A stretch of DNA of 63,897 nucleotides, the filler included, from Reticulomyxa filosa (lineage: Eukaryota; Protista; Foraminifera): NCBI GenBank assembly GCA_000512085.1. It is 23 parts of 23 records of this genome, joined end to end, with 100 filler letters (N's around TTAATTAATTAA, not from the genome) between each part and the next. Parts side by side here need not be neighbours in the genome. Positions count along the whole stretch, not along the records: positions 17,314 to 20,612 come from ASPP01029273.1; 22 more parts are not named here. One strand, given 5' to 3'. A model generated the notes under the pieces. It was not told the origin of the DNA. It did not search any database and was given only the letters and a program-made list of their open reading frames with translations. Position numbers and translations under genes: made by a program. Shown here one piece after another: positions 7,170 to 20,612 of this stretch (position 1 is the first letter of the stretch; every line of letters starts with the position of its first letter).

Positions 7170-8297
7170 TTGATGGGAGAGTCAGTAACCAAACCAATGC
7201 TAGATTGCATCGTCTCAGCAAAACCGATGACGTAAGAGGAAATGGCAACACTCATACCGACACTCAAGAGCAACCCAATGGCAGAGCCGACGTGTGGTCC
7301 AATGGTGCGACTGGTCATGTAATAAGCGCCACCACCTTTTTGAAGCCCATTGCTACAAATGGCGGACAACGACAGGCAAGTCAAACTCGTGGCCAAAGTG
7401 GATAAAAACAAAATAACAATAAAGTAGGGCAGGCCCGTTTCACCCACAACAAACGCTAACCGCAAAAACATTATCACACCAAAGACACTCAGCATCACAT
7501 TGATAAACACACCATTCCATGTCCCAAATTTTTGGGGTGTTATCACTGTGTCTTTTTCTATTGTGTATACATATACATATATATTTGTTTATGTATTTAT
7601 ATAATTGTTTGTTTGTTTGTTTGTCTTGTTTTAAAGTGTAAATCAAACAAAGTTAAACTTTTCTCACTCGTTTCTGACTTTTCGTCAGTGATAGTAGTCG
7701 CCCCTTGAGATTCTGCTTGCAGTGTCGCCTCTTTTTCGACAATACTAGCTGTTCGCCCTTTCGTTTCCGTGATCATCTTTTCGAGCAATCCCGATGACCT
7801 TGGCACGCCCAGTTTGTCCGCTTTGTCATTGCTTGTCATTTCTATCATCGTTGATTTTTCTGGCTCGTTCGCATTATGCAATTGTATTGATAAATGCATT
7901 GTTTCCACTTTATTTTTTATGTTTGTTTAAATTAAAAATAAATGACGCCTTTTTTTTTTTTTTTTTTTTGCTTTCATTCGACCCCTTACGTCGCTCCCTC
8001 CTTTGTGCACAAACCAAGTCCTCCTATTTCTGGTGTTTTGTCCGGCGTTAGAGATACGGAATTCTCTTCTTCTACAGACCCCGTGTGATAGTTCGGACGT
8101 CGTCCTTGATGAGACAAGTAGTAGGTCGCTTGTGGGAAAGATTCGTTGGGATCGACATAACACACAAGACCATACTGCTTTCGTTCAATCATCATTCTTT
8201 GCGTTTTCTCCACAAACTGGTCATACCAGTTTTCATCTTGCCCTACTTCTACTCCTTCTTTGCTTTCAACTACCTGTGGAAGTTTGTTTGGTTCCAT
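7170..8297 (-). CDS. SLC12A: SLC12-family cation-chloride cotransporter (NKCC/CCC-like), 5' exons only
   Basis: KFGTWNGVF..MLSVFGVIMFLRL..VVG and LSLSAICSNG..GGGAYYMTSRTIG are SLC12 signatures. Three exons (about 8297-7990, 7908-7650, 7560-7170); truncated after DSPIN. Confidence 0.88.
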
Positions 8298-8629
8298 TTT
8301 TAACGTAAATTGGGCAAGCGAACTTTTTTTAAATTTTATTTAGATAGTTTGCGAGGGAATTTCCAACACTTAAAAACTAAAACCTTGCGAACAGTGTCAA
8401 ATCATTTCCTCTGTTATGTTTTTAAATTTTTACACATCGTATTTTATTATAAATAAAGATTGAAGATGAAATGGTTTTTGCCATTAATATAAGTATTACT
8501 GTAAAGTTAATTGAGTATTTAAAGGACAAAAAAAAGGTTTGAAGCGGTCTAACAATGGTTTGACCACAGTGTTGAGTGATTATAGCCGTCATAGTATTGC
8601 TTTTCGAATTTAAACAGTTGCAAAATAAG

Positions 8630-10284
8630 ATGGAAACATTATCACGTCAAGAGACAAACAACAACGAGGAAATGACAGCGCTAGACACGCAATTATGGAA
8701 AATACATGTCCAAAGATCCAAAAAACAGGGAAAGAAAAATCGCGTGTACAGCGTTAACAACGCAGCTCTTCAAGGGAACAAAAAAAAATTCACCCCTGAA
8801 AGTTTCCAAATTAATTCCAAAACCAATTCTCTGACAAATCTCAATCGAACGACAACATCTAAATGGCAAGTAACCAATACATATGATGGAGAATGGAAAA
8901 ACGACTTGCGACATGGTGTGCATCTTGCACTTGTGTAAAACACTGCAAAATACTAATGACAATAATTGATTGTTTTTGCATTCAAAGGATATGGAGTGGA
9001 AACGTTGGCAAATGGAGTAAAATACGAAGGTGAATGGAAATATAATAAAAAAAGTGATTATGGAGTGTTGTGGGTTCCAAACAGCCAAAAAGAAAACAAA
9101 ATTGCAAACGACGAAATGCAATCTGTACATGTGCAATCATTGTTGGAACTGCAGACAAAAATACAGAATGAGATGATCCAAAGCAATTCGGATAATTCAG
9201 TACAATCGACATCAATGCGTCCACGTGAACATCAAAACACTCATCTCTTGAAGAATAATTTGAGAAAAATGTATCAGGGTTATTGGAAAAATGACTTTAG
9301 AGATGTAAGTTATCTTATGAAAAAAAAAAAAGTACTATCAATTTGACGTAAGTAATCAAAAAAAAAAAAAAAAAGGGAAAAGGTATATTTTATTTTAAAA
9401 ATGGAGATCGATATGAAGGTGAGTATCGCAAAAATGTAAGACATGGTTATGGTGTGATGCACTATAAAAATGGAGACAAATATTCGGGAGATTGGCAATT
9501 CCAAAAAAAAACAGGGTTTGGTCGTTATACGTTTGCTGCCACCAATGACATCTTCGAAGGGTACTGGTTATTTGATCGCAAAGAAGGCCCAGGTCATTAC
9601 ATGTATTCCAAAACAAACCAATTGTACGTAGGAGAGTGGTGCAAAGACGTCCCTGTTTGTGGCTATCTTATCAATCCAAACCCAACATTTTTGCAAAATC
9701 AAATCCCTGAGGTAATATTTCCTCCAGAATCTATATACGTATACACACATATATATACATTTTTTTTGGAAATGTAAACAAAAAAGTGTATACGTAACAA
9801 CATGTACGAATAGCTGTTTTTGGTAGAAGCGGATGACGTGTTGAAAAAACAAATTCAAAGCGTTAGACAAGAAAGAAATGCTATTCGCTCACTCGCAAAT
9901 TCCAGTATCGAAGCCTTGTTCGAACGTCATTCACAGACAGCAGACATGTTGAACGTGGTTTTCTTGGGTATAGCAGTACCGCTCCGTAAAATGCATCCCA
10001 CAGATTTGCATTTTGTGCGCTTTTATGTTTTGCAATCGCGTCTATTACAAGTTATTGCGGAATTTGGAATTGGTAATACTTCAACGGATATTCTTCACTC
10101 AACTTTGGATAATTTAGGAGTAAAGTTTGGAAAGCCAAGTCAAAAGACTATACTTAAACTCAAAGAAAAAAATTGTGTTGTAGATCAAAAAACTTATACT
10201 CCTACACAATCACAACAATACCTAATCATGACATTGTTTGATTTTGCCAAATTTATTTTTTTGTTAAAAAAAATAAGGAATTAA
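8630..10284 (+). CDS. MORN3: MORN repeat protein, MORN3-like, multi-exon
   Basis: Seven MORN units (YDGEWKNDLRHG, YEGEWKYNKKSDYG, YQGYWKNDFRD, YEGEYRKNVRHGYG, YSGDWQFQKKTGFG, FEGYWLFDRKEGPG, YVGEWCKDVPVCG) followed by IPE..ADDVL as in MORN3. Confidence 0.78.
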
Positions 10285-10639
10285 AACAAATCAAAGGGTT
10301 TACAAAGTTTTAATAAATACAATTTGATTTCATTATCACAATTACAGTATGTTGCAAAGAAAATTGAACGCCTAAAACATATCTTATGATGATAATTGAT
10401 TTTCTCAATGAAAAATCAACATTTAGACCTAATTTTTTTTNNNNNNNNNNNNNNNNNNNNNNNNNNNNNNNNNNNNNNNNNNNNTTAATTAATTAANNNN
10501 NNNNNNNNNNNNNNNNNNNNNNNNNNNNNNNNNNNNNNNNTTTTTTTTTTTTTTGTTCAAAATAATCTTCCGATATAAGAGGTTTTAAAAAATACACGTA
10601 TACATATATGCACATAAATATTATTCATTTGCCACACTA

Positions 10640-12757
10640 AACTCGGACCCATTCCTTTGCAGGATTGCGTCTCTGGTTTTCGAATATGTCAATAGTGACC
10701 GGCATTTGCCTCATGTTGAACGAAAAGCCTTCTTGTCGAAGTTCGATATCCAAGCCCGTTTTGTTGACAAACAGGTAATTGGTATACAAATAAAGGATAT
10801 TGGTGGCCAGGGTTGAGGTCGACTCGTCGCGGAAGAATGGGACCGTATTGCAAGTCTTCACCGCCGCGCATACCTTCAGCAGCTTTTGCTTTGTCTGGGT
10901 ATGCATCAGGTGGATTTTTAGAGGCTCGCTGTCCGCACCGGCAATGCCACAAAATCGGACTTGCCGATGCCAGAGATCCAAATTGACATGAAAATTTCCT
11001 CCAAATTCTGTGTCACATCATCGTAGTTTTTTTTTTTTTTTACAACACCACTTTGGGATAAATATTTCCAAAAAAAAAAACACATTTTTGTTTTGAACAA
11101 AACGTTGTCGGCCAAATCCAATGCCACGTGCTTGCTTTCGTACGCGGCGATCTTTTGCTCCCAATTAAGACGGTTTTTCTTGAGGTGGACGACGATTTCA
11201 AAGGGAAACAAATTGGTGATTAACAAGGGTGTTTGAATCATAATACTGATTAAATCGCGATAGGCCCTTGGCATCACGAAAAAGTTTTCAAGGTTATCCA
11301 ACTGCTGCCTTTGTGATGATGATGATGATGATGATGACGATGAGGAAGAGGAAGAGGGAGGGGAAAGACGTTTGGATACGACGGTGAGTACTCGCGAGCT
11401 TTCGATCATTTCGTCGACCGGTTTCAATTTGATAAAGCTCCAATCACTGGTTTTCTGCGGTGCAAAGTGAATGTTGATATGTTGCGGGTCAATGGATAGC
11501 GGGACAGGGACACTTTCCCCTGGCTGGACAATACCAAACTCTTGAGTGGACTTGAGCGTGACTGGATCAAATTTCATAATGTGTAGATTCTTGAAACTGC
11601 GCAGCGAGTCGCTGCCGTATTCCATTCGAATGCGCAGGGGCTCCAAAGTGTGGTTGCGTATTTCGCAAGGACTCCAAATGAACACATATTTACTACCTTT
11701 GCGAAACACGGTGTGCAGTACGACCATTACTTTTTTTTCGCGGTGATAATACTTCTTTCGTCTGTCTCAATTTCACATACACATAATAAATAAATAAATA
11801 AATGAATGAATGAATAAATGAATGAATTAGAAATACACACAAAACTCAGTGTCAGCAACGGATATATTTTCAAACAAGGCAATATCCCCGATTTGAAATG
11901 AAATGCAAAGACTGTTGTATTTGAACAGCTTTCCGTCAAAGGCGGACTTGAGACTGCCCGGGATTTTTAACGCCGCCGTTTTGTATGGTTCAATCACTTG
12001 CTTGTTGGCAGGCTCCGTGGTGGGCCAAACCTCCAAGGGTTCGCCCGTCTTATTTACAATATAATATGGTTTCCAATTGGTTATGATTCCATGTCTGCAA
12101 CAAAAAAAAAAAGATAAAATCAATGTATATTTTTTATTTTGTTTTATTTGATAAGTGTTACATTGTTCCAAACTTGTGTGTAGTGGCAAGTCGTGGCAAG
12201 GCGTACAATGTATCCATGACAGTCTTCAAAAAAAAGTGTGTGATGTTGATATTGACGGGGTCGGGCTCTTTTTCGTCGGACGGCGCCAGTCCCTGGAGCT
12301 TGAGAAAGATGGCCCAATTGTTGGTACGACTCTGCGATTGCAAGGCGCGATTTAGGTTCAACTGCACGTCGAGCTTGGTCTTTTCGAGCAGAGGCTCCAT
12401 GGTCACGATCATAGGATTGTAGTAGTGCGAAGTGAGAAGCGTTTCCAGATTCCCGTCGACGCCGTGTTCGTGTTGGCTCACATCGCATTGGATGTTGACG
12501 GCCTTGAGATCGAAGAAGGGCATGGCCGACGTGGTTACGATATCGTTGATCACGGATAGTGAGATCTTGTTTGCGGAAAAGGCGATTCGACGACTCATAG
12601 AAGAAGAAGAAGACGTGGGGATGACTGCAGTGGATTTGGGAGTTCCACTTTCGACAGTTTTTAATTGGGCTTGAAGTAGTCTTCTTCGATAGCACGAATG
12701 GAGGGACCAGTTTTGGTAAGCACAGGAGATGTCACCGTCGTGGAAGAGGAGGAGGAG
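10640..12757 (-). CDS. VPS13: VPS13-family lipid transfer protein, internal fragment (VAB/SHR-binding repeats)
   Basis: YYNPMIVTMEPLLE, PYYIVNKTGEPL, SPCEIRNHT, TPLLITNLFPFEI and YLFVNKTGLDI are the repeated P-x-x-I-x-N motifs of the VPS13 VAB region. Confidence 0.88.
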
Positions 12758-15700
12758 NNNNNNNNNNNNNNNNNNNNNNNNNNNNNNNNNNNNNNNNNNN
12801 NTTAATTAATTAANNNNNNNNNNNNNNNNNNNNNNNNNNNNNNNNNNNNNNNNNNNNAACAAATATTCCACATTTTCGATAGCTGTACGCTTACGAGTTG
12901 AATATGACATCCAAGATCAAATCACAAGTGACTAAATATCGTATCAAAAGAAGAAGATGACCAGTCTGTTAAATTAAATGGAACAAATAGTTACATCTAT
13001 CTTTCTTTAATAATATACAATTGATGTGTTATTCTTGTATATGTACATAAATAGATCTGAAAGAACAAAAAATATTGTCTGGAAGAAATCGTTGGAACTA
13101 ATAAATAACTTGCCCAAAGTCAAGTTGGTATATTATACGTGGTCATGTTTTGGTTGTATTTGCACTGTCTATGATCAATATGAGCATCCTCAATAAATAG
13201 TGATACTAGCAGACAAATAAATTGGAATCAGGTTCAGTAATATTGGAATCGGCTCTACAAATGGTCAATTGAAATGGGAAAAATATACAATTGAATTGTC
13301 AAATATTAAAATGTATCCAGTGTCACTTAGTCACCACCGAGGATGACAAAAAAGATATTGATCCAATCTATTGATAAAATGCAGTACATTATGTTGTTAT
13401 CAAATTTGCGGATTGGCTTGTGAACTTACCACAAAGCAATCGACTTTTGAATTTTGATTGCGATATACAAAAGAGATCAAAATTTACATTACACCAACAC
13501 AAGAAAGATAGATTACCAAAGTTGTGATGAATCTTAATATGAGTGGTAAAGAATAGAGTGAGTGTTCGAGCGAATGCGTATTCCATGAACAACTTCTCTT
13601 ATAACGTATAATCCTGTTATCATTTGAACTCCCAAGAACACAAAATGGCAAAGATCAATCATCAAAATTCTATTTCAAGGTATACATTTTATTTTTATCA
13701 TGTTTTTAGTTTTTGTAATATGTAACAATGTGGACATAGATATTTTCATTGTACAGTGGTTTGCTTCAGATTTGTATTGAAAAAAAAGAAATATGAAGAG
13801 GAAGAAGAAAAATACATTAAGGGAAAGGAAAAAAAATGACAATCATGATATTATAAACATATGGATTAATGTAAGAAATATCACAAGTGCTAATGAATCA
13901 CGCAAGATGAACTTACCTGATGAAGCAAGTGGACCAGTGCAAATAAATAGAATTGGTGCAATTAATCCACAAAAGGTGTTGGCATATGTCACCAAAATTA
14001 TGAGTTGTTATGGGTGCTGTTAATGGAAATGAAGCAAAGTGACAATGGACATTGTGTGATTAAAATTACACAACAACATCCAGATTAGCACACAATTTTT
14101 ACTCAAGCCCTCATATGCATAATTGATCAACTATCCATCGTCATCATTCACATGTATTAGCAATTGTGTGTATGTGGCTCCCGATATCGACACACCAAAN
14201 NNNNNNNNNNNNNNNNNNNNNNNNNNNNNNNNNNNNNNNNNNNTTAATTAATTAANNNNNNNNNNNNNNNNNNNNNNNNNNNNNNNNNNNNNNNNNNNNG
14301 TGTCAAACATGAAGACAGTATACACCTATGTTAAATAATATTGGAATATTTTATTGTCATTAAAAAAAGGAAAAACAAATGGACTAACATAATTGACAAC
14401 GAGTTTGTCAAAATCTTTGATCCATCCTAATTGAATATTTAATGTTCGAATCCAATGATGAATAATGATTTGGATCTCTTCTTCTTTTGACTGTTTTGGT
14501 CATAAGGCAAAATGAGAAAAACAATAAGAAGAAAAACCTAAAAAAATAACTTAAACGAACTTTCATTAATAAACTAAAGTAATTTCTTTCCATTTTTTTT
14601 TCCTTGAGATGATCTTTGATTGCAAAGATGATGAAAAGAAGTTTTTCAACTTTTTTTTAAGATTACGAAGGGTCAATAAAAAATTGAAATAAATTTTTTT
14701 ATTTAATAAATATAAACTTTGTAATGAGAAAATATTTACAGCAAAACTTTGTGTCTTATTGAACTTATAATGACATCCATTATTTACACATACATACAAA
14801 TGTTATTTTTTTTCCTATTGGAAAGAAACCTTCTTTTTGTCATTGCAAACAATTAACAAATCTCTAAAACTGTACATTAAGCTTTTTTGATCGACTTTTT
14901 CTTCGTTAGCCACGTGTCCCTGTCGTTACGCCAAATAGCGAGCAGCCATCAATTTCATTTTCACAAATGGTAACAATTGTTGCATTATCTTATGTTTCGT
15001 ATGTTGTGATTTAATTTCAAACACCTCTTTGAAATTGCTCACAGCCATATCACTTTCAGATTCTGAGGTAATTTTATATCTACATGTTTAGTAAAATTTA
15101 CAGGACAACATTTTTTCAAAATCTTTTTTCTAAAAAATGTTTCAAAGTGCATTTCATTTTTTTCTACAATTTTTTGTCAATTACAAACATTTTAATTATT
15201 TTTTATAATATTAGTATTGATTTTTTGAATTTTTATTTTTTCTTTGCAAATTTGGTTCTTTTTGTGTTTTTAAAAATTTTTTAGTAGTTATGTTATTGTT
15301 CAAATGAAGGTTTAATTCATATTTGGGGATGATCACACTAATAAATTGATTTTACTACAATTTTTGTGAATAAATGTTTATTTTAAGAATTTTTGTACCA
15401 AATAAAAAAACTAGCAATTAATTGATATATTTTATTTCATCAAATACCTTTGTAAAGTGAATGACAAATCTGACAATGAATTAAATTTTGTATAGTGAGC
15501 AAATATGCAATGAAAACATTTATGTTCATTTATAGAGCACACAATTTATAAATTATTGAAGATTAATCATTTTTATCAAAATTAAATTTGTAAAAAGAAT
15601 ATATCATCAAAATATTTCAAGAGCAGATAAATCAATATAACGTTAATGATTACATACTGGAGCTCAAGTTATTGCTAGCTTACCAATTGACATCAACACT

Positions 15701-17313: not shown

Positions 17314-17793
17314 GCTTCCACCAATCACTGCACGCACTCCTTCATAATCATCTTGTTTTCTTCCAATTTGAATTGGATAATTATGACTATCCATCAAAGG
17401 GGTCCATTCATTATACTTTTTTAATTTATTCCTTTTGATATCACTCCAAACACTTACATATTTCATCACCAATGCATGCTTATGTTTTCCACCAAAAGAT
17501 AACAGAGTGACTCCATTTTTGTCTTTGTTGTCTCTGTGATCTGCCAGTTTCAATACGCAGTGTCCAAGTAATTTGACTTCATTTGGATACTCACAGACGA
17601 ACTTGTATTCGTTTTTGAGTGTATGATAAGAATAACAAGCCCTCTGTTTATAACCTCCACAAATGAGGATTTCGCATTTGTACCGTATACATTGAGGTAA
17701 AGCAAGTGAAGAGGACACATCCTTCACATCCTGAAAGGGAGTTGAGGCAATAATGTCTTGCTTTTGCTTTCTTATTATGTTCTGGTTGCTCAT
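17314..17793 (-). CDS. Kelch-like family protein, 5' part
   Basis: QCIRYKCEILICGGY..CYSYHTLKNEYKFVCEYP..GHCV..LLSFGG; aligns with the ORFs at 6113 and 63876. Confidence 0.82.
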
Positions 17794-19003
17794 GCGTTAA
17801 TGTTGAGGCACCATTAAGTTGAATTTTAAAAACTACAAAACTCTGTTTTCCCTTTTTTTCTTTCAACAAAAAAAACTTAGTTTTTAGAAAACAAAAAATA
17901 TAATGAAGAGAGTTAATGTTATTTTTTGCGTCTCTGAGTTTTCAAATATTTGGAATTGCTTGACAAAAAAAAAATTTGTGTCTTTTTTGACAGCTTAAAA
18001 TTTTCAATTTAAAATGTATTTTATTATTTTTGATTAAAGACTTGACTAAATAATAGATTGTGTCAAACTATTTATCATGCCTTTAATATGTCAAGATTCA
18101 ATGTTCAGTTTTCGACTCCTAAAATCACTTAATAAGATTTTTGCTTTTTTTTATTTGTTAAAAAATTGAAAAAGAAAAAAATCAATGTATTCCAAAAGGT
18201 TTTAACAAAACTCTAAAAACAGTTGTTCAACTTTTTTGCTAAAACAAACGTAGTTATGTTTCTCAGCAGACTAAAAAAACTTTTCCCTTTTTTGAACTTT
18301 GTGGATTATTTGCATTTCAATCCTAATCTCTTGCTACTTACATATAAGAAACCTGTTATCTCGTGCATCTCCAGCATATTTTCTATCACAATAATCGGCT
18401 TTGTTCTGTAATTTTCTTTCGTTTTTGTGACAACATGACATAACGTGACTTCTCACCCTTGTTTGTAAAACACAATAAAATAAATTTTGCTTTGTACCTT
18501 ATTCACAATAGTTACCTAAAGAAATCCAATTTCGTGTTTGCGAGGTTTTGGCAGAAAAAGTTTCGTTATTATTATTTTTTTTTTTGTTTCTATCATCCCC
18601 CTTTTTTCCTTTCTTCAAAACAAAAAAAAAAAACTACGTACTATTTTTAGGAAAACTACGCAATGTCATATAGCAAAGAAAACAAGACGAAATACTTGGA
18701 GGTTAATTTTATTTTTAGTTTATGTTTTTATGTGTTTTTTTTTTTATAAAGGAAAAGTAGATAACCTTATTTTCATATTTTTTTATCATACAAAAAAAAA
18801 AAAAGACAATACCCAGTGATGTCAATCCTTTTGCTATGCTGTCCGTGGTAATAAAATCGATGAGATATCATGGAGATGCATCACTTGGAATATTTCCTGT
18901 TTCTTCTCAAAATATAAGTTATAATGACAAAACAATATGGTATATATATATAATTGATAAAACAAAGAAAACAAAGAAATAGTGTCAAATTGTATTTCAA
19001 TAG

Positions 19004-20612
19004 GAAATGCGAAATGTAATGGAGGCATGCAAGACAATAACAACAATAACAACAATAATAACAACAATAACAACAATAATAACAATAACAATAATTACAA
19101 TGACACAAACGAAAAAAGATCGAAAATATATTAAGGAAATAAAAATATTGGTCCGATTATTCGGAGACTCGATCATTGAAGAAGAGTTGCAAAAGAAAAT
19201 AGCACATTATAACGGGAATATTGAATTAGTGATTAAGGACATTGTGCAAGAATGTGTTGAAAAAGAGGTATTGAAACAACAAAAACAAAATAGGGTCTTC
19301 TGTTCTAATCTGTATTAATTTTACAAAAAAAAAAAAAAAAAGAATAAATTAGAAGCAGATCACAAAAGCAATAATGAATTAGAGAATGTAGAACAGGTAA
19401 TAATAAATTTATTTTATTTATCTATTTTATCTATTTTTTTTTTGGCTTGTTTTCCTGAATAAATGAATAGAAGCAAGAACAAGGAAATACAGTGAATGAA
19501 GATAATAAAAGAGTACAAAAGGAAATGGAAAAAACGGAAATTGGAGAAACAAAACCAGGAATTAATTTGCAAGGATATTGTAGCAATGAAACCTGTTTGG
19601 CATCAAAAGCGAAATTACCAGTATGGGTAAATATTGGATTTGACAGTATTGCAATCATTTCAGATAAGACATCATTTAATTGTCCTGATTGCAAAAAATC
19701 AACAGTCATATACATTGCCAAGGCAATGTTCTATAATTCTGAACATTCGATTTATGCAAGTAATGATTCAATGCCTTTGACGGATAATAATTATCAATGC
19801 TCGTATTCAATCAAAACTGGATTGTCTTATGAATTGAAAGCAAACAAAATAAGACAGCATGCAAAGAGTATTGAAGATTTGAGAGAACGTAGTGAAAATG
19901 CAATGAACAGCATTGAAATTAAGAATTTAGTAACAGAATTGCAGAAATTCGAAATTATGGTTGTAAAACCACCAAGTTTGAAAGGAAATGAAAGATTATT
20001 GGAAAAGATTCAAGCAGATTATGGTGGTGATTTTAATCAAGCATTTGATATTGGAAGATTTACTATTTTATGTGATAATCCGACCAAATTACAAACTGCA
20101 GTTGCAGTGATGAAGAAGGCTGAGAAATTCAATTTGATTGTATCCGAAGATAAGAATTTTTTTGGTAAACAATCAAAGACACATCATCGATTCCATAATA
20201 TTAAATTGTATGTTCCAAAACATGATGTATATATTGAAATGCAAGCAACATTGAAGAATTTTACAACATTGGAAGGATATACTGTCATTGAAAATCCAAA
20301 ATTAAGTCATTTATTTTATGAGCATATTCGGGCATGGAAACCTAGTAATCAATTAGAAGAGGAATTGAAACAAGCAAGCGATGAAGCATTGACTAAAATT
20401 AATGATATAATTTGTGAATGGATTGATGTAAAAGAAATCAAAAAAATTTCAAATCGTTACAAACCACATTCAGAAATTCGAATATTGAAACCTCCACAAC
20501 TAAAAGGAATAAATGATGAAGAAATCAATGTCAAAAATAATATCTCATTAAAATTGGCTAAGTTTGCATATGATCAACTTTGTAAATTCAATCCAAAAGA
20601 AATGAAAGGACA
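19004..20612 (+). CDS. Ubl-junction / CUE-like / C4 Zn-domain / RelA-SpoT-type nucleotidyltransferase protein, copy 1 (exons 19004-19267, 19343-19396, 19471-20612; 3'-truncated; one homopolymer frameshift near 19115)
   Basis: CNGG-MQ at 19015-19032; KEIKILVRLFGD..EEELQKKI..YNGNIELVI; PGINLQGYCSNETC...FNCPDC; then K..ER..EK..DY.GD, FDIGRFTI, HRFHNIKL, IEMQ, SHLFYE in RelA/SpoT motif order. Probable degenerate upstream exons at 18650-18940. Confidence 0.8.
19034..19100 (+). repeat. (AAC/AAT)n trinucleotide microsatellite (poly-Asn linker in the GGMQ frame)
   Basis: acaataacaacaataacaacaataata... directly visible. Confidence 0.85.

Follow-up and report, generated by a model that had tools for sequence, protein, structure and literature searches.

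We analyzed a stretch of DNA from the foraminifer Reticulomyxa filosa (63,897 nucleotides, made of 23 parts of assembly GCA_000512085.1 joined end to end; hereafter the window) and report on a gene on the plus strand of the part that comes from ASPP01029273.1. We think it probable that this locus holds the 5' portion of a nuclear R. filosa gene with introns, that the gene codes for an NLR-like (STAND) protein with a Tas1-like synthetase head, and that the protein serves a (p)ppApp-type killing or signalling role. The gene copy in the window encodes, in this order, a short helical N-terminus, a beta-sandwich domain with four conserved cysteines (Cys4 domain) and a Tas1-like RelA/SpoT homologue (RSH) domain, and in the paralogues this RSH domain forms the effector module at the N-terminus of a NACHT protein, an NLR-like architecture. 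RSH-type pyrophosphokinases have a central part in the stress signalling of bacteria, in which the toxic small alarmone synthetases (toxSAS) have recently been recognised as a class of toxins and antiphage effectors. Eukaryotic RSH enzymes are known mainly from plastids.

The sequence-only reading of the window had proposed a RelA/SpoT-type (toxSAS-like) nucleotidyltransferase on the basis of a series of motifs, and all of these motifs are found in the expected order at 19966-20337 (+), within one open exon (translation of 19474-20610, +; Table 1). The basic donor-ATP motif K-x3-[SR]-x3-K is present as LKGNERLLEK (19981-20007), and the Asp of FDIGR (20047-20049), the predicted catalytic residue, is the only invariant column of a 55-sequence alignment (A2). 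EMQ is not followed by the Arg found in the classical motif ExQxRT, and the same holds for Tas1. The G-loop, which reads GYRSxH in classical RSH enzymes and GYRD in distant relatives, reads HHRFHN in the window copy, with His at the position of the base-stacking Tyr and without the Gly-Tyr pair. Searches of the window copy with Pfam and NCBIfam, even at E<=10, found no HD hydrolase, TGS or ACT domain, in agreement with the claim of the sequence-only reading that a hydrolase domain is lacking; the NCBIfam scan gave noise only, and Pfam found no secretion-related domain. The linker after the synthetase domain contains ILKPPQLKG (20482-20508, +), a near-repeat of VVKPPSLKG in the first strand (19960-19986, +) that is kept in paralogues. 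This echo could be a vestige of a duplication, or a pseudo-substrate or autoinhibitory element.

A protein search with the long plus-strand frame returned 82 homologues, nearly all of them R. filosa RFI_ proteins, with a best identity of 89%. The Pfam family RelA_SpoT (PF04607), which the sequence-only reading had named for a check, matches 23 of 26 paralogue domains at E<=1 (best E 6.9e-7), whereas the window copy reaches 16.9-18 bits (E 0.0035-0.0078), under the gathering cut-off of 27 bits; the expected match is therefore seen in the paralogues and falls short in the window copy. We compared three profiles, made from foraminiferal sequences only (A1), from the 55-sequence alignment (A2) and from non-foraminiferal relatives only (A4). 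With A1, Tas1 (6OX6) is the sole relevant match in the PDB (E 0.0014), and an exhaustive search of 1.84 billion representatives returned 95 proteins at E<=1e-3, in which non-foraminiferal proteins are reached at E 6.5e-9 to 1e-3. The non-foraminiferal relatives P0105, P0108 and P0111 exceed the RelA_SpoT cut-off, and hhalign aligns A1 with A4 (metagenomic relatives) over 143 columns with a probability of 99.8% (E 6e-28). Because the paralogues match RelA_SpoT and hhalign links the family to relatives that pass the cut-off, the domain is a divergent member of the RSH superfamily and not a non-member, as the sequence-only reading had held. Profile A4 matches Tas1 at E 2.1e-26 (96 bits; next match 44.5 bits) and other RSH enzymes at E 1e-10 to 1e-4 (YwaC 1.5e-10; Rel, RelP and RelQ 1e-7 to 1e-6), and profile A2 matches Tas1 at E 1.5e-22 (83.7 bits; next match 37.3 bits). 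Judged by these profile scores, the subfamily is Tas1-like.

Two of the metagenomic or bacterial relatives carry the Tas1-like domain within much larger proteins. P0107 (3127 residues) combines it with an extracellular contractile injection system (eCIS) core and a C-terminal calpain protease, and P0110 (2115 residues) is a fusion with a phage MuF/SPP1 gp7 head-morphogenesis protein. Both look like delivered polymorphic toxins, and the eCIS core and calpain protease of P0107 together with the MuF fusion of P0110 suggest a delivered-toxin setting for the non-foraminiferal relatives.

The AlphaFold model of 19825-20493 has a predicted local distance difference test score (pLDDT) of 82.8 and a predicted template modelling score (pTM) of 0.74, and it displays the mixed central beta-sheet with flanking helices of the SYNTH fold. 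Foldseek with this model returned Tas1 (6ox6_A) first, at E 2.4e-8, and RSH synthetases only among its top 50 matches. The VIA Z scores are 13.4 for Rel, RelQ and YwaC and 12.3 for Tas1 and RelP, over 128-178 aligned residues, and 11.6-11.7 for CapRel (7ztb, 9erv), which gives the longest alignment (173-178 residues). The predicted fold is that of the RSH SYNTH domain, as expected from the sequence-only reading. We rejected a generic enzyme of the Pol-beta type, because Cid1, Pol mu or lambda and RsfS reach Z scores of only 7.5-8.4, compared to 10-13.4 for RSH enzymes.

The long CapRel alignment bears on an alternative that keeps the NLR-like architecture, in which the domain, like CapRel and FaRel2, would pyrophosphorylate tRNA at its 3'-CCA end and would stop translation rather than deplete ATP. 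The adenine-specific toxSAS divide into (p)ppApp makers and tRNA modifiers (PMC11782079), and the altered G-loop could suit a macromolecular acceptor. However, profile A2 gives E 1.5e-22 for Tas1 compared to 0.5 for FaRel2, profile A4 (Tas1 at 2e-26) does not have FaRel2 among its matches at E<=0.001, and the helices ahead of the first strand are, by eye, not notably basic, contrary to what is expected for tRNA binding. We regard modification of tRNA as unlikely.

With the same architecture, the product could instead be (p)ppGpp or a related guanine nucleotide, used as a second messenger or in the manipulation of bacterial prey or symbionts. R. filosa feeds on bacteria, which is a point for this alternative. 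RelQ, RelP and Rel are among the top VIA Z scores (up to 13.4), and Dyrka et al. proposed such a role for the RelA_SpoT domain of fungal NLRs (PMC4986451), but the sequence features of the foraminiferal domain are Tas1-like (K-x3-R-x3-K with DYxGD, ExQxR without the Arg, no GYRSxH G-loop) and an intracellular NACHT-WD40 protein offers no evident route for nucleotides into bacteria. We give this alternative little credence and continue to favor a Tas1-like synthetase of the (p)ppApp type.

The family is large, as the sequence-only reading had supposed from three copies: the 103 family proteins that we retrieved contain 96 matches to the domain, 47-61 sequences cover any one catalytic position, and the family has at least about 60 copies in one R. 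filosa genome. Overall identity of the paralogues to the window copy ranges from about 50% to 93%. The catalytic Asp is Asp in 54 of 58 paralogues, the Glu and Gln of ExQ are kept in 44/47 and 51/54, and the donor motif keeps its first Lys in 56/58, its Arg in 52/58 and its second Lys in 58/59. The His and the Tyr of HxxY are each kept in 56 of 57 paralogues and the Trp of the HxxYE...R..W helix in all 58 of 58, while the aromatic position of the G-loop is His in 45 and Tyr in 11 of 60. Because the catalytic residues are kept at such a range of overall identity, the active site looks selected. The conservation of the Asp and of ExQ across paralogues, on which the sequence-only reading had staked its proposal, is thus borne out.

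This conservation also bears on the alternative that the domain is catalytically dead or repurposed (as an adaptor or for oligomerisation), or that the family is decaying and the window copy is one of its pseudogene fragments. The replaced Gly-Tyr of the G-loop, the deletions or frame disruptions in P0011, P0014, P0067, P0080, P0023 and P0070 and the lack of RNA evidence are consistent with this alternative. Retention of the Asp, ExQ, the basic motif and HxxY in 89-98% of paralogues argues instead for selection on the active site, and the 380-codon frame of the window copy is uninterrupted, which makes a dead domain or pseudogene rather improbable. Internal deletions, scrambled stretches or damaged P-loops are seen in P0011, P0014, P0023, P0037, P0067, P0070, P0080 and P0081; P0014 has no EMQ, the Cys domain of P0011 is disrupted and the P-loop of P0037 is deleted. 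The damaged paralogues suggest either fast birth-and-death turnover or errors of assembly and annotation in a fragmented genome.

The sequence-only reading had implied a family of free-standing enzymes, and this did not hold, since the paralogues place the domain at the head of NACHT proteins, three of them with WD40 repeats. Paralogue P0007 (locus L001, contig ASPP01027167.1) contains a Cys-rich domain, a RelA_SpoT match of 26.3 bits, a NACHT match of 37.5 bits and 13 WD40 repeats. In P0084 (1368 aa) and P0086 (1734 aa), the RSH-like domain lies around residue 150; these two proteins and P0007 have 9-14 WD40 repeats each, and NACHT is also matched in P0083, P0085 and P0088. Among the 25 family proteins that reach at least 260 residues beyond ExQ, 19 contain the P-loop GxxGxGK[ST] 200-253 residues after ExQ, mostly at 222-241; for the other six, NACHT remnants were present in all four inspected, and P0044 has a precomputed NACHT match. 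The presence of the domain at the head of NACHT proteins gives concrete support to the guess of a role in immunity or cell death that the sequence-only reading had made.

The window copy extends about 125 residues after ExQ, and the contig ends about 100 residues short of the expected P-loop; by comparison with the paralogues, the window copy would continue into NACHT and WD40 beyond the contig end. A stand-alone small synthetase without NACHT or WD40 is a highly improbable alternative: the contig does stop before NACHT could appear and some annotated paralogues are short, but the last 40 residues of the window copy align with the conserved linker that precedes the P-loop in those paralogues that are long enough, and the short paralogues are marked partial or lie on short contigs.

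Several observations on the NACHT-WD40 loci stand beside these results. At L001, a single RSH-NACHT-WD40 reading runs across three abutting frames (7831-12994, +), but the annotation divides it into two genes, of 641 aa and 1026 aa, which suggests that a frameshift, a short intron or an error of assembly lies behind the split. No high-identity tandem repeats were found in the WD40 DNA of L001, the one paralogue examined, unlike in fungal HNWD-type NLRs. In P0066 (RFI_31460, 321 aa), the RSH-like domain is cut just past ExQ and joins WD40 directly without NACHT; a wrongly joined gene model or recombination may account for this protein. On a metagenome contig from ENA (L002), which is compact and apparently intron-free, an uninterrupted 1170-residue open reading frame (ORF; P0117, 2745-6257) encodes ankyrin repeats, a Tas1-like RSH domain and NACHT; the pairing of RSH and NACHT therefore exists outside foraminifers and fungi too.

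The Cys4 domain precedes the RSH domain. In alignment A3, C20 and C52 are invariant and C15 and C49 are at least 90% conserved, and the AlphaFold model of the domain is all-beta with a pLDDT of 90.2; the four Cys residues of 19537-19878 probably form a zinc site. The domain matches no Pfam family, and no solved relatives were found by Foldseek against the PDB at E<=0.001 (best Z in a wide VIA search, 5.5). Models in the ESM Atlas resemble it at template modelling (TM) scores of 0.68-0.76; these come from rotifer, sponge and Mucoromycota proteins, which also bear ubiquitin, RING or ADP-ribosyltransferase (ART) domains. The Cys4 domain may represent an undescribed eukaryotic domain family, and our guess is that its role is regulatory or targeting.

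The gene has two GT-AG introns (19268-19342 and 19397-19470), as expected from the spliceosomal introns claimed by the sequence-only reading, and both lie upstream of the synthetase domain. We assigned intron 1 because the frame reaches exon B only with 19268-19342 removed, and the intron pair is backed by the match of exons A and B to consecutive segments of P0003 when the exons are compared with paralogues one at a time. Exon A is 61% identical to residues 62-102 of P0003 and ends at the same EKE junction, and exon B matches the segment after EKE in P0003, P0001 and P0011. Exon A has no Pfam match; its resemblance to UBA/CUE had no Pfam support and is not claimed. The piece 17314-20612 is AT-rich, with 29% GC. 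Because the GC content of the gene (30%) matches that of its flanks and GT-AG introns are present, we assign the gene a eukaryotic origin; bacterial contamination was rejected on account of the introns, the 30% GC shared with the flanks and the foraminiferal neighbour gene.

We then compared the foraminiferal domain with known systems. Among solved structures, the best match both by profile and by Foldseek is Tas1 (also Apk1; PDB 6OX6), a (p)ppApp synthetase toxin of the type VI secretion system of Pseudomonas aeruginosa. The two have in common K-x3-R-x3-K with DYxGD, the catalytic Asp, ExQ without the Arg and the HxxYE..R helix, but their identity is about 20% and the G-loop of Tas1 is GYSGVN whereas the foraminiferal one is HHRFHN. 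Tas1 is a secreted bacterial toxin with an immunity protein, while the foraminiferal domain lies inside a eukaryotic protein of several domains. The product of Tas1 is (p)ppApp, and its activity depletes ATP; related toxSAS pyrophosphorylate tRNA (PMC11782079; PMC12691689). RelQ/SAS1, RelP/SAS2 and YwaC share with the domain its fold (Z 12-13.4), the catalytic Asp and ExQ. These enzymes, however, occur on their own, as proteins of about 210 residues; they have GYRSxH and ExQxRT and make (p)ppGpp, their profile scores lie far under that of Tas1, and the foraminiferal domain is embedded between the Cys4 domain and the NACHT linker. The long RSH enzymes (Rel, RelA, SpoT and plant plastid RSH) have a homologous synthetase core but also HD, TGS and ACT domains, none of which was detected in the foraminiferal gene, a nuclear gene with introns and a different domain context.

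The closest precedent in domain order is found in fungi. RelA_SpoT is one of 12 N-terminal domain classes of fungal NLRs, and RelA_SpoT-NACHT-WD40 occurs in Gaeumannomyces graminis (Dyrka et al. 2014, PMC4986451). Because this precedent is published, the architecture is less unprecedented than the sequence-only reading had implied. In fungi this class is rare: it makes up less than 1% of the N-terminal domains annotated, and 17 NLRs out of 4,613 in Sordariales have it (PMC12258605). Likened by domain order, the fungal and foraminiferal proteins have an RSH-like effector, NACHT and WD40 in a filamentous or syncytial host; the foraminiferal family differs in belonging to another supergroup (Rhizaria), in its at least about 60 copies in one genome and in two extra modules ahead of the effector, the helical segment and the Cys4 beta-sandwich. 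We know of no biochemical test of the RelA_SpoT domain of a fungal NLR, and no paper that connects Reticulomyxa with NACHT, NLR or RSH came up in our literature search. What is new here is the foraminiferal expansion, the Tas1-like subtype and the extra zinc-type beta-sandwich, and what was known is RelA_SpoT-NACHT-WD40 in fungi.

We propose the following mechanism. The WD40 array would sense a non-self or danger ligand, the NACHT module would then oligomerise, and the N-terminal RSH domains, brought together or released, would become activated. With ATP as the donor, they would pyrophosphorylate an adenine nucleotide at its 3'-OH, so that (p)ppApp would be made and ATP depleted, as for Tas1, leading to local arrest or death in the giant syncytial cell. 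The enzyme activity, the acceptor substrate and the role in immunity or allorecognition are all parts of this proposal. In its fullest form, the proposal is that R. filosa has at least about 60 NACHT-WD40 receptors with an active Tas1-like (p)ppApp synthetase as executioner and a new zinc beta-sandwich as a regulatory or targeting module, which we put forward tentatively, as a possibility.

The following points weigh against our reading of the locus. The window copy is under the RelA_SpoT gathering cut-off, and its fusion to NACHT is taken from the paralogues because the contig ends before any NACHT motif. The change from Gly-Tyr to His-His in the G-loop could alter or abolish acceptor binding. 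Tas1, RelQ, RelP, Rel and CapRel are tied by structure (Z 11.7-13.4), and the substrate can therefore not be read from the fold, so that the placement in a subfamily comes from sequence. Several paralogues are visibly degenerate, and any single copy may therefore be a pseudogene. The search of sequencing runs returned a single run, with 9% of the sampled words, and gave no evidence of expression. No (p)ppApp hydrolase or immunity partner was found, although no search for one was made.

Table 1. Features of the RSH-NACHT family gene in the window (positions along the window).
Feature	Position	Strand	Description or basis
Exon A	19007-19267	+	Low-complexity N-terminus, then a short helical segment (KEIKILVRLFGDS...VIKDIV) kept in paralogues
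Intron 1	19268-19342	+	GT...AG, 75 nt, 21% GC
Exon B	19343-19396	+	18-codon mini-exon, NKLEADHKSNNELENVEQ
Intron 2	19397-19470	+	GT...AG
Exon C	19471-20612	+	380-codon open frame, ended by the edge of the contig piece
Cys4 domain	19537-19878	+	All-beta, four conserved Cys (GYC, CLA, CPDC); alignment A3, AlphaFold
RSH synthetase-like domain, as modelled	19825-20493	+	Conserved core 19966-20337; Pfam, AlphaFold, Foldseek, VIA
KPPSLKGNERLLEK	19966-20007	+	Translation
Predicted donor-ATP phosphate-binding motif, K-x6-K-x3-R-x3-K, then DYGGD	19966-20031	+	HMMER alignments; same pattern in Tas1 (IKSRERAMQKINNDYKGD)
DYGGD	20017-20031	+	Translation
FDIGR	20044-20058	+	Translation
Predicted catalytic Mg2+-binding Asp in FDIGR	20047-20049	+	Aligns with the active-site Asp of SAS enzymes
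THHRFHNIK	20179-20205	+	Translation; G-loop equivalent
IEMQATLK	20233-20256	+	Translation
ExQ motif (EMQ) with predicted catalytic Glu	20236-20244	+	Alignments with Tas1 and YwaC
SHLFYEHIRAW	20305-20337	+	HxxYE...R..W helix; aligns with Tas1 GHKYYEDWR
Start of linker toward the NACHT P-loop	20494-20612	+	Aligns with the conserved linker of paralogues

Other features of the piece were also recorded. An AAC/AAT microsatellite (19035-19110, +) at the start of the gene is readable in two frames. Paralogue P0002 uses the poly-Asn frame (MQDNNNN...), which stops here at 19134; the Thr/Ile frame is continuous with exon A. Exon A has a possible alternative start at the ATG at 19097, and the conflict of frames could come either from a one-nucleotide indel or homopolymer error near an A6 run or from a true start at this ATG. 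A divergent neighbour ORF (17314-17793, -), which starts with MSNQNIIRK and runs off the left edge of the piece, is a member of a large group of foraminiferal proteins, the 'Kelch motif family protein' group, whose clusters are 100% Foraminifera (Atlas feature score 0.97), and has no Pfam match of its own. The spacer between this ORF and the RSH gene is 1.2 kb long, with 26% GC.

If the enzyme is active, effector-NOD-repeat receptors with heads of a bacterial toxin type would have arisen or spread beyond fungi, animals and plants, nucleotide pyrophosphorylation may serve as a mechanism of cell death or arrest in eukaryotes, and many natural variants would be on hand for probing the function of the domain. 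If the proposal is true, eukaryotic immunity or allorecognition would kill through the synthesis of alarmones and the depletion of ATP, a mode of killing known to date from bacterial toxins only. The fusing, multinucleate network of the foraminifer parallels the filamentous fungi, in which NLR expansions are tied to non-self recognition, and this parallel renders the allorecognition hypothesis testable.

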